Shown here one piece after another: positions 1,886 to 37,003 of a stretch of 57,905 nt of DNA (its first letter is position 1; the number at the start of each line of letters is the position of its first letter). Under the pieces are notes generated by a model that worked only from the letters and a program-made list of their open reading frames with translations, was not told the DNA's origin and searched no databases. A program made the position numbers and the translations under genes. The DNA is from Cercozoa sp. M6MM (lineage: Eukaryota > Protista > Endomyxa: Ascetosporea). Location of the stretch: NCBI GenBank assembly GCA_040357565.1, contig JBDODJ010000071.1. The stretch is one strand, 5' to 3'.

Positions 1886-2390
1886 NNNNNNNNNNNNNNN
1901 NNNNNNNNNNNNNNNNNNNNNNNNNNNNNNNNNNNNNNNNNNNNNNNNNNNNNNNNNNNNNNNNNNNNNNNNNNNNNNNNNNNNNTACCCCTCTTGCCTC
2001 CCTCCCCCTTCAGCGTTCGGTTTCCGCAACACGGTGCAGAATGAGGTCGTGCTGTTGCAGGAGGAACTGCAGTTTGGTACGACTCCGATTCGAACGCAGC
2101 CTTAACCAGAGACTAAACGCAGCCTTAACTAAAACTCTTAATTGTTTGACAGGTGTGTTCAAGACGGTCGAGGAGTTCGGCGGCACGCTGTGCGAACTGC
2201 TGCGACCGCGTCCTGTCGACACTGACGATGCTCCCACTCAGGATGATCCCAGTGGGGATGATCTCACTCAGGATGATCCCACTCAGGATGGTCCCAGTGG
2301 TCAAAGTGGCGATCAGCGTTTCCTGTACGACGACGAGGACGACCGACTTGACGTGGCGACGCCTGGCTTCGTCGTCGGTGCCCTTTACCC

Positions 2391-2423
<33 letters not shown>

Positions 2424-2950
2424 CGGCCCCTGTTAGCCTCTCTCTTTCTTCGCTGTTTACCCCCCTACCCCGCGTGCAGAGGATCGGAACGACGTGTACA
2501 AGGACCTGCCGAATTTCGGTCCGCGCGCCGTCCGCGCGTGCGCGCTGATCGACGCGTTTCTGCGTCGGCATGGCAGTCGCATTCGCGTCTGGTCCATGCA
2601 GTACGCCTGTCCTGTCCATCTGCACATGCATGTGTCCATTTCTCCATATGTGTGTGTCCATCTGTCCAGACGCGCGAGCATAGCGAACCAGGTGCAGCAG
2701 TACGCGACGCGGTGTCAGGAGCAGCGCCGTCTGCGTTCGCTGCTGCTGCGACTGAGCGACGTGCACCGGCGGCACCGTCACCGGTACCGTGCCGACGGTT
2801 TTGTCGCCACTGATAGTGCCTCTAATGGTGCCTCTGATGGTGCCTCTGATGATACCACCGTCACTGATGATGCCACCATCTCTGATGATCTCGCCGCACT
2901 CCTGCGCGAGATCAGTTGCGCTCTTGTCGAGATTCGCGGGTACACACACA

Positions 2951-3034
<84 letters not shown>

Positions 3035-4415
3035 GTGACTGACTGACTGACTGACTGATTAACTGACTGACTGACTGCTCTCAGCGGTGACGACAAAACA
3101 AAACACGCACTGAAACTTCAAAACGCATCGACTCTGTCGCAAATGTTAGTTTATTCCGTTTTTTGGTTTTGGTGTTTGTCCATGTCCTCGAGGATGAAGC
3201 CACGCAGAGAGGAGGCACAGAAACGGCTGGATCGCGAACTGCGCTCTTTGCGCGAGCAAGTGGCCTTCTCTCATCGTGCACTCTCGCGTCTGTGGAAGAC
3301 CTATGTTGAGTATAGAGATTTTTAGTTTTTGAGGATTTTGATTGTATTCATGTTGGCAGCAAGTTCGGTGCGATCGAGGCCGAGATGTGCAACACGGGTT
3401 TGATTGACTTCAGTTTTTCCTGCTTTAACTGGCTATTGCCTGACAGGAAGCTCGCTTGACTGGTTGACTTTACCCGTGATCGATGTGGTGTGTGAGCAGA
3501 GCCGGGCAAGCAAAAGCTGAGCGAGGTGATGCGACCCTTCGTGTCGCCGGACAATCTGACCGAACTCGAGTTCAATCGTTTCGACATCAACGCCGTGCTG
3601 GAGCGGTCGCAGTCTCTGTATCTCCATTTGCTTTCTTTGTCTATTTCTTTAAATCTCTCTGCACAATTCCTCTTTGCACGAATCTTCTTGCAGAACGAAA
3701 GAGCAGGAGGAGAAGAAAGTCAAAGAACTGGCAGATACCCTCGTAAAACCGACTCACATGTGTTTGTCTTCTTTTCGACTTTGCAGTGTCTGCTTGTTTG
3801 CAGGATGATGTGTTTGGAACTGTGCATCTGGTGGCTGCCGACACTGCGCGCTACGTATTGGTTAGTCCTGCCATCCAGTCTGTCTTGTAGGTTGATCTCT
3901 GTACGTGCTCGCAAGTGCGCAGATCTTCAAGGAGATACGTCTCATGTGCGATCGCTTCTTGCTGGCCAAGCGAGAAGCCGATGAGACTGGTACCAAAGGT
4001 GTGCCTTGTGTTGAGACAAGGAAGTGTTGTGTTCCCCTGTAGTTGAGTTGGAGGCTGCACGCATGACACGCAAGACACATAGCATGCAGTCACCGTGGCT
4101 GCAACTGGTCGCTGCTGACGATGACAGCTCCGACGAGGAGGTCGGTCCCTTCGAACGCGACGTGGAGGTACAGACTCTGTCTGTACGACTACAATACTGT
4201 GCATGGTGAACTCACGCTCTCCGTAGATACGCCGCATCCAGCTTCTTCTGCGTCAGAATGCACGCAAGCTGTACCATACTTCCTGTACCATTGTGCTTGT
4301 ATCCATGCGCACCCATCCAATGAGTAGCAAGAACTACTCTCGGCACTTGCGTCCCTACCAGTTGCTAGAGCAGCAGCAACAACAGCAACAACAGCAACAA
4401 CCATTGCAACAGCAA

Positions 4416-4447
<32 letters not shown>

Positions 4448-20273: not shown

Positions 20274-20283
20274 NNNNNNNNNN

Positions 20284-26200: not shown

Positions 26201-26926
26201 GCAGTAATAAGGAATATGGGGTATGTGGTGGTACAACACTCACTCACGTGCAACATGTGGCTACAGTCTCGGCGCCCAGCGAGGAGGAGGAGGCCGTCCT
26301 GGTGGACATGGCTGACTTGTCCGTCTCCCTTAACCAGCAGGCAGGCGGCAGTGTCGATCTCGACAAGATCGTGACTGAGCTGCCCTTTGATGACAAGTAG
26401 CTTGCCCTGCCCCCCTTGACCTGACCTGACCTACCACCCCCCCTCTTAGGCACCTGTTCACGTTCCTGCTGTGCTACGGCATGCACCGCGTGCCCAAGTC
26501 GTACCGCATGGCTATATGGATATATATATATAGTATATATATATATATTTCTTGTGGCCTTACAGGGTGCAGGACCGTCTGTCGCACCGTCTGCTGTCGC
26601 TGGCGCTCAACGCCGACCGCAGCATGCCCGACCGCGTCACGGCCATCCGACGGTGCGTTGTTGCCCCCTTCTCAAATACCCCTTGTGTACCCCCCTTACC
26701 CACTGTGCAGATGGACGCTGCTGCCGCAGACGGGATTCGCCGAGGTGCTGACGCTGTGGCAGGCACTCGAGCAGGAGGCGCTGCGTGCCAAGCAGGAGGG
26801 CCGGTATCTCACCTTCCCTTACCCGCNNNNNNNNNNNNNNNNNNNNNNNNNNNNNNNNNNNNNNNNNNNNNNNNNNNNNNNNNNNNNNNNNNNNNNNNNN
26901 NNNNNNNNNNNNNNNNNNNNNNNNNN

Positions 26927-26977
<51 letters not shown>

Positions 26978-26987
26978 NNNNNNNNNN

Positions 26988-27275: not shown

Positions 27276-30200
27276 TCGGTCCTATCACCCAGTCATATGG
27301 ATGCAAGTGCAGCCCACGGAGGAACACCTGCGCATGGTGCGCAACGAGTGGCGCAAGGAGCAGGTACTGCTGCTGTCGGGGGAGCGGTGTAGGGGAACAA
27401 CTAAACCTGTGTCTGCGTGTGCGCGTGCAGATGCACCGCGACGCGCGCATCGTGGTGCTCCGCGCGGCCATTGACCTGCTCCGCACGGCTGCGGACGAAC
27501 AGGCGGCCAACGACGACTACCGCGTCACCACGGCGTGGTACATTCTCGAGCAGGCCACGCGACTCGACCACATTGCTGCGCAGGTACGCCCTCTTTACCC
27601 CTTTCCACCCCCTTTACCCCCCCCCCCCTGCAGACCGAGGTGATGACGGCGCTGGCAGCCGTGTCGCCTGCCGAGAATGCTGTATTTGCCTCCTATCTAT
27701 TATACTGTTTTTTGTATACACAGATCATATTCGGTATCTTGGTATGTATGTATTTGTAGGTGGGATCACTGTCGGAGAATGTGATGCGTCGTGTGCTGCG
27801 ACACGAGCTCGAGTGCAGCCGTGTGGTAGCTGCCTACTTACTTCCTCTCCCTCGCGCACACTACCTGTACTGATGGCGAGGCACAGGACACGAGCGCGGC
27901 GCTGCGAGAGGTGCTGCGGCGGTACAGCACTCTGCCGAGGCAGCTGGAGAATGGCAACGTGCCTGTGTAGCTTTTGGCTTTACCCTACCTCCTTCCCCCC
28001 TACCCTCCTGGTGGCAGGGACACCATCGCGAGTGTGACGACGACGCCGCGTATCGCCGAGCATGTGGCCGAGTTCAGTACCCTGCCACACCACCCCTACC
28101 TTTACCCTTCCTTACCCCCCCCTACCCCCAGCGTCGCTGTGTGTGCCGCCGCGCTTCGTTACCAAGTATTGCGAGCGTGTGGTGCGTTGTTCTACCCTCT
28201 CCCCCGGCCTTCCTCTTTACTCCTTAACCCCTCCCCCCCCCCGCGCGCGGTAGGTGGCGCCGTTGCTGCGTCGTGTGCAATCGGAGGCAGTGCGTGTCGC
28301 CAAGGAGACTGCCTCGGAGGAGTCCAAGGTAGGCTTACTCCCTACCCCTGCCCCCCTACCTCTTTACCCCTATCCCACCCCCTACCCTTATCCCCCTGCC
28401 CCTTATCCCCCTACCCCATCTCGGCAGGAGCAGACGGAGCTGCCGACGCTGCTGCACGACGACGTGGCCTACATCACGGCCGTGTTCTTGCCGGTCAGTG
28501 TGACTACCTCGGGACCCACCTGTGTCCGCGCTGATGTGGGTGTATTGTGTGTTGTTGTGTGACTGCAGAAGTGGTACGCTCTGTGCACGGAGGAGACGCG
28601 CGACGAGTTCGTGCGACTGCTGACGCTGCTGGCCGGTGCCTCTGCTTGTCTGTAGGGGGGGGGGGGTAAAGAGGGGGTATTGTATGATGCCGCTGCACAG
28701 GCGACCTGCGTCGCACGACACTGTGTCCGGGCAGTGTGCCCAACGACGAGGGCGACATCGTGGTCGACCAGGAGGCGAGGTACCTCCTACTCTACCCATA
28801 CCTGTTATCCCCTCTTATCCCCTCTTATCCCCTCTTCCCCTCTTCCCCTCTTACCCCCTCTTCCCCTCTTATCCCCCTTCCCGTTGTGACAGGGAGAAGT
28901 CGCAACAGCGTTTCGGACTGACGTGGCAGCTGTTGCTGCGTTTCTGCGGCGTCGCTTTGGACAAGTACGGTCCGTCCGTCACGGTACACACACACCCATC
29001 CATGTGTCCCGTACACCTGTTCCGTCCATCTGTGTGTCCAATGTGTTCCCCTGCCCCAGGTGGAGGGCACGTCGGTGCCGACTTTCTTTGCCGGCAGCGA
29101 CCGCCTGCGCGTGGCCGGCAACGACGAGCGCCGCGAAAACGTGCTCGTCGTCATGCAGCGTCTGGTGGGCTGCTTCTGTTCCTTGCTCCCCTCCCGTACC
29201 CCTTACGCCCCCCCCCCCCCCGCGCAGGTGGATGCGCTGACGGAGAGTGTGCTGCCGGCCGATGCTGTCGCAGTTCTGACCCAGGGCGAGACGACGGCAG
29301 TCGAATCGCGCTTCGGACAGACACTGTACTCCCTCGCCTTGTTTGTCCATATACTGTCTGATGTATGTGTATGTGTGAGTGTGTGTGAGTGTGGCAGGTG
29401 TCCAGTGCGTGATGCCGCCATCTACCGCGAGTTGCTGTGGCGACTCAAGGTATTTATATGTATATATATATATATATATAATATGTGTGTGTATATGTAT
29501 ATATATATATGTGAGTGTGTATATATATATATATATGTATATGTGTGTGTGTGAATATACACAGCTGGTGGAGAAGCTGCTGCCGGAGGTGTTCTACACG
29601 ACGACAACGCTTCCCAAGCTGTCGGTACCACTTGTGCATGTACATATGTACGTGTGTGTGTGTGTGTATGTGGGCATGTGTACCGCAGGTGTTGGCCGAA
29701 CATGCGGGCGAGTGGCGACGTCAGTTGCTGCTGTCGCCAGTGCAGTTTGAGCGCATCCTTGCGCAGGTGTCCCCTCCCCTTTCCTTCCCACACCCCCTTT
29801 ATCCACTCCCTGTGTTCAGCTTGAACGGCTGGACGGAGTGTTTGCGCTGCCGGTGTTGTCGCGTCGCGTCAAGATGATTGCGTGCCGGTAGGGAGCTACC
29901 CCCTCCCCCTACCCCCTCCCGATGTTGTGTGTTGAGTGCAGCTGCCGCACGAGCGACGAGTTCGCGGAGCACGCCGTGCCGCTGCTGGAGCGGTGAGTCT
30001 CGTGTTTACCCCCCCCCCCGCGCACCCTTTATCCCCTTCGATTGTACAGTATGGTGGCCGAGGCGCTGGTGCACATGGACGTTGCTGCTGCCCTCGACAG
30101 TGAGGTAGTTCCCTCCCCGATCTATCTCTATGTATATGGGTATATATTTATATTATATATATATATGAGTATGTGTATAGGTCAAGTCGCTGCTGAGTCG

Positions 30201-35284: not shown

Positions 35285-37003
35285 GTGCTGTCGTTGATGC
35301 TGCGCGTGCCGACTCTGCAAAACATGCTGCAGAAGATCCTGCTGGCTGGTACCCCGTGCACACCTCTTATTGGATTGCAGATAGATTTGGTAGCTGTGTG
35401 TGTGTGTGTGTGTGTGTGTTGTTGTATTGTGTCGCTGTGTGTGTGTGTGTGTTAGGCGACAATGCCAAGGCACTCGTGCTGGCCGATAATGTCTTTGCAT
35501 TGCTCTCTGTACTGCCTTCCCTCTGTGTGTGTGCATGTGCTTGATATATATATATATAAATGTATGCGCACTGTGTGGACAGGCCGTGCGCGAGGGTGCC
35601 CTGGATGAGAGTGACAAGGCGCGCGTGCTGTCGCTCGTGACGTCGCTCGCACGTGTCGACCCGGCCCTTGTCTTCCGCAAGTCGAAGCGTGCCGTGCAGT
35701 CGGTCCTGGCGACCTACATGTACCCCTGCGCCCGTCCCGTTCTCCACATCTATCTACCTACCCGTGGTATGGGTGGTACAGGCCGATGCCGGAAGGAGTG
35801 CTGGCACTCGTGTCGCGTCTCATCCAGGACGGCAGCGTCTTCATGCTGGAGGTATGCCTGTGCACTGTGTGACATGTGCTTGTGTGTGTACGTGTACGTG
35901 TACGTGTACGTGTACGTGTGCGTGTGTGTGTGACTGTGCAGTGCGCCCAGTCCCTGCTGGAGTCGTTGCCGGAGGCGGTGACGCTGCAGCTTCTGGAGAC
36001 CCCGCTGTGGAAGAGCTTCCTGCAGCTGCGCGCGCTGCAGGTATCGCGCTGCACCGCCGGTACCTGTCGCTGTCCCCCCGCTCTTGGCCACGTGGACTGC
36101 ACCATGCATGTGTGTCTGTGTGTTGTGTTAGGTGTGTCTACCCAGCGCGCCCAGGCAACGCGTGCACTCGTGTCGCTGTGTGCTCGCGCGGTGCTGCGTC
36201 TGCGTGCGCGTGCGCAGCGCCTGGTGCAGTGGACGGCGCCGTGGGACGAGGCCTTTAAGGTGCCGTCGAACCAGGACCTGTCGGGACGCAGCGACAAGGC
36301 CAAGAACTTCCTGCCCGACGAGGGTGCCTCTATCCGATATCTATCTGTCTATTTATCTGTCTATCTATACATCTTTCTATCTGTCTATGTACTAATCCCA
36401 TTCAATTGTTGTTGCGCAGAGTTTGGCGAACCGGCCTTGCAGATGATTTCCGCCATGTCGCGCACTCTGCTAGGTAGCCTTCTTGTCTGGCAAGATACAG
36501 ATGTACTTGTGTCTGTGCATACATGCATGTGCACTCAGAGAGCAAGTGCATCGTTGGCGAGCAGGCCGCGCTCGACCTGCTTCGCGAGTTCTGGTGTGTT
36601 TCTGCCCCCCCCCGGCCTGTGTGCATGTATGTGCGTGTGTGCTCATTCGCAGCGAGGAGACGGCGGCGCCGGTGGCCGAGGATGCCACCGACCTGCGTCC
36701 GCGCTGGAACGCCGTGCTGCGCGAGGCCTTGGCGCGCGTGGCCACGCAGGCGACCACCTCGGTGCGCCATGAGGCCGTCTCGGTACACTCCCTGCTGCAG
36801 ACTGTCTGACTGATTGACTGACTGACGGATGAATGTGTGGATGTGTACAGGTGAGTGCCGTGCTTCCTGCGGGCACCAAGCGCAAGAGCCGTGACGCGAG
36901 CGCTGCTTCCAGCGAGCACACGGTGAAGACCGCACCGGTGGTCGAACCCGAGACCGAGTCCGAGTCCGAGTCAGATGATGGCGCTTTCTCGCTCTTTGAC
37001 TAA
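11290..37003 (+). CDS. Giant uncharacterised alpha-helical (HEAT/ARM-like) protein, roughly 4000 aa in ~160-170 exons, ending in a ribosomal P-stalk-like motif
   Basis: A continuous series of CpG-rich, Leu/Ala/Val/Arg-rich short exons; every junction I spot-checked joins in frame by GT-AG. I noticed no internal stop/start or intergenic-like stretch. The final exon 36851-37003 reads VSAVLPAGTKRKSRDASAASSEHTVKTAPVVEPETESESESDDGAFSLFD*. The start ATG is uncertain and a 100-N gap lies at 26827-26926. Confidence 0.7.
13364..13600. repeat. Intronic (CT)n/(ATCTCT)n microsatellite
   Basis: Directly visible. Confidence 0.95.
26827..26926. other. Assembly gap (100 N) inside the giant gene
   Basis: N run; it may hide exons. 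Confidence 1.
33988..34160. repeat. Intronic compound microsatellite (CT)n(GTCTCT)n(GTCT)n
   Basis: Directly visible. Confidence 0.95.

Follow-up and report, generated by a model that had tools for sequence, protein, structure and literature searches.

A ribosomal stalk-like tail at the end of a giant non-ribosomal protein in the amoeba Lemnamoeba sinaloensis

Why should a giant, non-ribosomal protein end in a peptide that reads like the ribosomal stalk's C-terminal domain (CTD)? Eukaryotic ribosomes universally use this CTD to bring in elongation factors and to activate GCN2, and toxins of the ricin type locate the ribosome through it. The question is raised by Cercozoa sp. M6MM, that is Lemnamoeba sinaloensis (Apofilosa, Rhizaria), a marine amoeba from fish gills that feeds on bacteria and whose genome, with 9,694 genes, is unusually rich in simple repeats. 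The window analysed here is a whole stretch of 57,905 nucleotides (contig JBDODJ010000071.1; C71), and positions given without a contig name refer to it. To judge from its sequence, one gene in this window appears to end in a docking tail of the stalk type, here in a new setting, on a non-ribosomal giant; we take the tail itself to be real and treat its function as a proposal.

The terminal exon and its place in the gene

Gene MHM6MM_002872, as defined by an ab initio model and by the deposited proteins P0001 and P0003, runs from 11290 to 37003 on the forward strand; its 25.7 kb are divided into about 166 exons, with a median exon of ~65 nt and a median intron of ~65 nt. The ab initio model comes from an exon-chaining program that scores codon log-odds together with splice-site matrices and whose training was repeated in rounds on the giant's locus. 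The deposited annotation was obtained with funannotate (train, predict and update) and transcriptome reads. The ab initio translation agrees with the deposited protein P0001 (MES1910242.1, 'hypothetical protein MHM6MM_002872', 4,284 aa, 100% identical over the longest exon) at 4,230 of 4,284 residues, including the junction 36782|36851, and MES1910242.1 finishes in the same residues as the translation of 36851-37003. A second deposited isoform, of 4,300 aa, differs at its N-terminus only and shares the C-terminal end. Intron density is extreme throughout 11290-37003, and simple repeats (CA/TG, CT/GA or TCTA-type) make up many of the introns. Assembly gaps, seen as runs of N, interrupt the gene at 20274-20283, 26827-26926 and 26978-26987, and across the gap near 26.8 kb the deposited protein has a short bridging stretch absent from the ab initio model; a small part of the giant may therefore be missing or wrong.

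The last intron (36783-36850, forward strand; 68 nt, GT..AG, phase 0) joins the penultimate exon (36653-36782, forward strand) to the terminal exon (36851-37003, forward strand), which, by its translation and coding score, encodes a 50-residue disordered tail followed by a TAA stop. A preliminary description of this DNA had attached the exon to those upstream and had read from it a TKRKSR patch, an Ala/Ser/Pro linker, an acidic run and SDDGAFSLFD immediately before the TAA. Each of these elements was recovered by translation of 36851-37003, the frame was the right one, being the only one open to the TAA (the remaining two are interrupted by stops), and the junction is in phase 0 in both the ab initio model and the deposited protein. 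The exon opens towards a basic patch, TKRKSR (36875-36892, forward strand), whose sequence might be read as weakly resembling a nuclear localisation signal (NLS), and continues through a linker of Ala, Ser, Pro and Thr into the acidic run EPETESESESDD (36944-36979, forward strand). This run contains CK2-type Ser/Thr sites, and its coding DNA is an imperfect GAGTCC hexanucleotide repeat. It is followed by the hydrophobic end GAFSLFD-COOH (36980-37000, forward strand), supported by translation, a match to the tail of PF00428, a pattern unique in the genome and an alignment with the amoeba's own stalk tails; ETESESESDD precedes GAFSLFD-stop.

The stop directly follows SLFD, so that the motif lies at the free C-terminus, behind a flexible hinge. 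When modelled with AF2, the terminal exon gave no secondary structure (coil, pTM 0.15), and among all 40-residue segments of the protein just two are strongly disorder-prone, the last 40 residues being one of them. A single-sequence AF2 model of the penultimate exon, in contrast, contains a confident helix over residues 11-42 (32 residues, mean pLDDT 86), the last folded element of the body. The modelled helix on one side and the coil on the other suggest that the folded body ends at the exon boundary and that the last exon is a floppy tail.

An annotation artefact or a minor isoform would be one way to explain the stalk-like end away: with the last intron retained, the protein would end in VHSLLQTV-stop at 36809, nine codons on, or the transcript might use another 3' end, and the cell would then produce the tail seldom or not at all. 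This reading gains something from the donor-like GTGAGT with which the terminal exon opens and from the closeness of the read-through stop. As a competing donor at 36850, however, GTGAGT scores only -0.17, whereas the last intron has a donor of 2.66 and an acceptor of 5.5 (rank 159 of 165, among the strongest of the gene), both above average, and its length of 68 nt is typical for the giant gene. The junction was also picked by two independent models, and in the transcriptome-aided annotation both isoforms have the same end. Held out of training, the terminal exon scored 0.67 per codon, as compared to 0.89 +/- 0.24 for the remaining exons. We consider an artefact improbable, and 36851-37003 very probably a genuine C-terminal module of the giant. 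When its 3' end was left free, the gene finder ran on into junk mini-exons, since its model lacks a termination term, and that run was discarded as uninformative.

Likeness to the ribosomal stalk

Searches for relatives of the carrier were made with individual exons, mostly ~20-60 aa long, and with the deposited record P0001 as the full-length query. Pfam assigned no family to the whole giant at E<=1, a PDB sequence search with the deposited protein found no relative, and NCBIfam gave nothing beyond a single meaningless 13.5-bit match. With the longest exon (100 aa), phmmer retrieved from 1.84 billion representatives only the protein itself and one unrelated 39-bit match, and a protein-atlas search with the same exon found no match. 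Word-seeded searches with the deposited giant, over its whole length and over residues 3100-4284 and 1900-3100, returned the query alone, and a metagenome scan for homologues found none. Given that the giant has no detectable relatives, its tail may be young. At 4,284 aa and without any Pfam family, the protein fits the earlier picture of a non-ribosomal giant of about 4000 aa; that no P1/P2 N-terminal domain precedes the tail was likewise borne out, since Pfam was blank on the whole protein and a uL10 domain is equally absent. The accompanying view of the giant as helical fared less evenly. Leu (14.5%) and Ala (10.8%) are frequent and Gly, Pro and Asn scarce, a composition that favours helices; on this composition and the folded penultimate exon, the body is probably alpha-helical. 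It could not, however, be assigned to a HEAT, ARM or TPR solenoid, as no Pfam repeat family was recognised at E<=1, and self-BLAST of the giant revealed no internal sequence repeats.

The terminal exon resembles the CTD of the stalk proteins uL10(P0), P1 and P2 (consensus SD[D/E]DMGFGLFD-COOH) in its position at the extreme C-terminus, its Ala/Ser/Pro hinge and its CK2-type acidic run, and its FSLFD is identical to the terminal F[GS]LFD of canonical eukaryotic P proteins. Measured against an acidic CK2-Ser cluster followed by [ML]GF[GS]LFD, the giant has E-S-E and FSLFD but carries Gly-Ala in place of Met-Gly. It differs further in that its carrier is a non-ribosomal protein of 4,284 aa with neither a P1/P2 dimerisation domain nor a uL10 domain. 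The terminal exon alone matched PF00428 (Ribosomal_60s) with 16.1 bits (E 0.016), over profile positions 56-88 only, which correspond to the tail, and below the gathering cut-off of 28.1 bits. With this score and no N-terminal helical dimerisation domain, the giant does not belong to ribosomal P1/P2, nor does it belong to uL10/P0, as the Pfam search of P0001 found no uL10 domain. The claim that the protein ends in a stalk motif stands for the order of hinge, acidic run and G-x-F-x-L-F-D and for the weak PF00428 tail match; Met-Gly is replaced, and the amoeba's own stalks differ.

The genome's true stalk genes, identified by Pfam profile with 80.2, 43.2 and 31.5 bits, all lie away from the giant's locus: two are of the P1/P2 type (contig C182, 6221-6478, reverse strand; contig C64, 4013-4069, forward strand) and one encodes P0 (contig C324, 9010-9240, reverse strand). 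The three share one and the same end, EESEEEMGFGGLF-stop. Their final MGFGGLF has Gly-Gly between Phe and Leu, where the usual MGFGLFD has one Gly, and no terminal Asp; read as sequence, the giant's GAFSLFD is closer to the canonical eukaryotic consensus than to the stalk tails of its own cell. If the tail were a mimic adapted to the clients of this cell, one would expect it to resemble EESEEEMGFGGLF, and the ending of the own stalks in MGFGGLF rather than LFD weakens the case for strict mimicry. From hinge to end, the giant's tail aligns with the own P1/P2-type tail with a score of 48 (z 4.6), a value reached by 0.1% of shuffles.

Chance, repeats and a second candidate tail

To what extent such an end arises by chance was judged from DNA patterns across the 23.6-Mb draft assembly. 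The genome contains the pattern [DE][DE]xxFxLFD-stop a single time, at the giant's end, and the control does not contain it, whereas FxLFD-stop, with the acidic residues dropped from the pattern, is as frequent as expected by chance (38 occurrences, against 38 in the control). From the giant's own amino-acid frequencies and 9,694 genes, ~0.006 protein ends of the type F[GS]LFD are expected by chance per proteome. The F[GS]LFD end exceeds chance within this genome; in a scan that covers a very large number of genomes, one may arise by chance. G-F-x-x-L-F-stop showed no excess over chance in the genome. Three further matches were set aside, namely FGLFD-stop on contig C17 and GFTGLF-stop on contig C137, both in non-coding-looking and non-acidic surroundings, and a weak tail-like match on contig C250, which we regard as noise. 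Hexanucleotide-coded ESESES(D)/ETETET runs, nearly always internal, are found in many open frames of the genome (contigs C1, C6, C26, C32, C33, C38, C101, C102, C134, C25, C91 and C297). As the giant's acidic run is repeat-coded and ESESES runs are common, the acidic half of the stalk match comes cheaply.

A second candidate tail was found on DPH5 (diphthine synthase), whose last exon lies at 1355-1420 on the reverse strand of contig C258, the gene body reaching up to ~3203 on that contig. In a four-exon, in-phase model, three more small exons beyond the conserved body encode a predicted extension of ~70 residues; its donor is good (3.84), its acceptor modest (0.18), and phase is kept. The C-terminal string predicted by this model is ESESESDGEAVPMTGLF-stop, with the tail itself ending in QAQAAESESESDGEAVPMTGLF-stop, and the extension comprises a basic stretch, ESESESD-G and then PMTGLF-stop. 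Like the giant's tail, it would sit on a non-ribosomal carrier, in a separate small last exon, with a basic stretch, ESESESD-G and a hydrophobic end in which LF forms the C-terminus or adjoins it. Unlike the giant's, the predicted DPH5 tail ends not in LFD but in GLF-COOH, in common with the own stalk proteins. Serine is encoded by AGC in the DPH5 tail and by TCC in that of the giant, and with these different codons neither tail is a DNA copy of the other. When the five tails (giant, DPH5 and the three own stalk proteins) were aligned, the invariant columns were E-x-E-S-E and L-F; a 19-position profile of the five, run genome-wide, retrieved those five and no further member. To our knowledge, eEF2 is the only substrate of DPH5, and eEF2 is the classic stalk client. 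A stalk-like tail on an eEF2-modifying enzyme would lend weight to the notion that an eEF2-docking tail is portable, and as circumstantial evidence it raises the odds that stalk-type tails act as docking modules in this amoeba.

The tail may also be real and its likeness to the stalk a coincidence, the product of a young exon, an acidic run born of a microsatellite and a fortuitous hydrophobic end, with no partner or one outside translation. Much in the genome would allow for this: the GAGTCC-type coding, the abundance of ESESES elsewhere and the wealth of simple repeats, together with a terminal exon whose GC3 is 0.74 against a gene mean of 0.83 and whose coding score is likewise the lower one (0.67 against 0.89). 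The own stalk tails differ from the giant's end, a very large scan should yield a few F[GS]LFD ends by chance, and acidic-hydrophobic ends are generic, as WTSLFD in Gcn4 illustrates. A coincidental tail could act as a relaxed Atg8-interacting motif (D-GA-F-S-L-F), fold back on the giant's own solenoid, or serve as an activator-like acidic/hydrophobic motif after nuclear import via the KRK patch. Of these, the Atg8 (LIR/AIM) candidate lacks the canonical core [WFY]xx[LIV], because F-S-L-F puts Phe at +3, and fits only the relaxed pattern with F/Y at +3. Against coincidence as a whole stand the very small number of F[GS]LFD ends expected in any one proteome, the agreement of the full order of hinge, E-S-E acidic run and G-x-F-x-LF, which goes beyond five residues, and the second stalk-like tail on DPH5, an enzyme that modifies eEF2. 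We hold coincidence to be possible, if on the unlikely side; if the tail binds nothing, it would show that a repeat-rich genome can yield convincing chance look-alikes of famous motifs. That the tail is a decoy, drawing off those ribosome-inactivating toxins from bacterial prey which dock on the stalk CTD, is far less probable than this, to the point of being barely credible. Such toxins recognise the canonical LFD-COOH form and the amoeba eats bacteria, but nothing points to a high abundance of the giant, and with one tail per 4,284 residues a toxin decoy would be very costly and unattractive on grounds of economy.

Proposed function of the tail

The reading we prefer is that the tail functions as a docking peptide in the manner of the stalk CTD, and on the combined analyses the probability of this reading falls only a little short of even. 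The last exon would then act as a flexible 'fishing line', made up of the basic patch, the hinge, the phosphorylatable acidic run and an amphipathic GAFSLFD-COOH. Its acidic run would steer the tail electrostatically to the basic-rimmed hydrophobic groove of a partner, where the Phe, Leu and Phe side chains and the free carboxylate could dock, and the docked partner would be kept near the giant scaffold. The likeliest client would be one of the stalk's own, with eEF2 or another translational GTPase as the first choice and GCN2 as the second; that the partner is indeed a stalk client we regard, from the same analyses, as doubtful. We infer the expression of the tail, its docking on any partner and the identity of that partner.

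Should the tail bind stalk clients, translation factors would be recruited to, or sequestered at, a site off the ribosome through motif mimicry. A more far-reaching possibility, and a distinctly doubtful one, is that the stalk docking peptide is a portable module that was added to DPH5 and to the giant via small terminal exons to capture eEF2 or other clients off the ribosome. The giant could on this same reading, and with the same degree of doubt, be a platform away from the ribosome that serves translation factors or the control of GCN2. For DPH5, a true tail would provide a simple logic by which an eEF2-modifying enzyme finds its substrate.

Two known systems can be compared with the giant's tail. 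The C-terminal tail of archaeal aP1 binds aEF1A, aEF2 and aIF5B; like the giant's tail it is flexible and has an end of the L..LF type, and it docks as a short helix in the hydrophobic grooves of several GTPases. It differs from the giant's tail in having another sequence and a ribosomal carrier. The activation domain of Gcn4 contains W-T-S-L-F-D and binds Mediator subunits. It shares with the giant's tail an acidic context followed by aromatic-x-S-L-F-D, but its motif is internal and binds Mediator, whereas the evidence does not place the giant in transcription.

The preliminary description knew of no account of such a protein, and the literature agreed: a full-text search returned P proteins, GCN2 and ribosome-inactivating toxins, and turned up no report of a stalk motif at the end of a non-ribosomal protein. 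The exception to be named is NSPA/ZZEF1 (p331, 331 kDa), the neuronal surface P antigen recognised by anti-P antibodies (PMC2150977). Like the giant, NSPA/ZZEF1 is very large and non-ribosomal and shares elements of the P epitope; unlike the giant, it has internal DDLG and GLFE/D stretches that make up a conformational epitope and not a C-terminal tail (PMC2150977). Its case is one of immunological cross-reaction, and a link to translation factors is not claimed (PMC2150977).

The 50-residue tail was also modelled in complex with two exons for the G domain of this amoeba's eEF2 (L023:1179-1730 and 1798-2451); the ipSAE was 0.00 in a run without controls, and this value counts neither for nor against binding. 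The genome also holds two copies of eEF1A, at 27651-28310 on the reverse strand of contig C47 and at 3666-4418 on the forward strand of contig C793, which encode an identical protein over the exons read and have a single intron each, as compared to the intron-dense gene of the giant.
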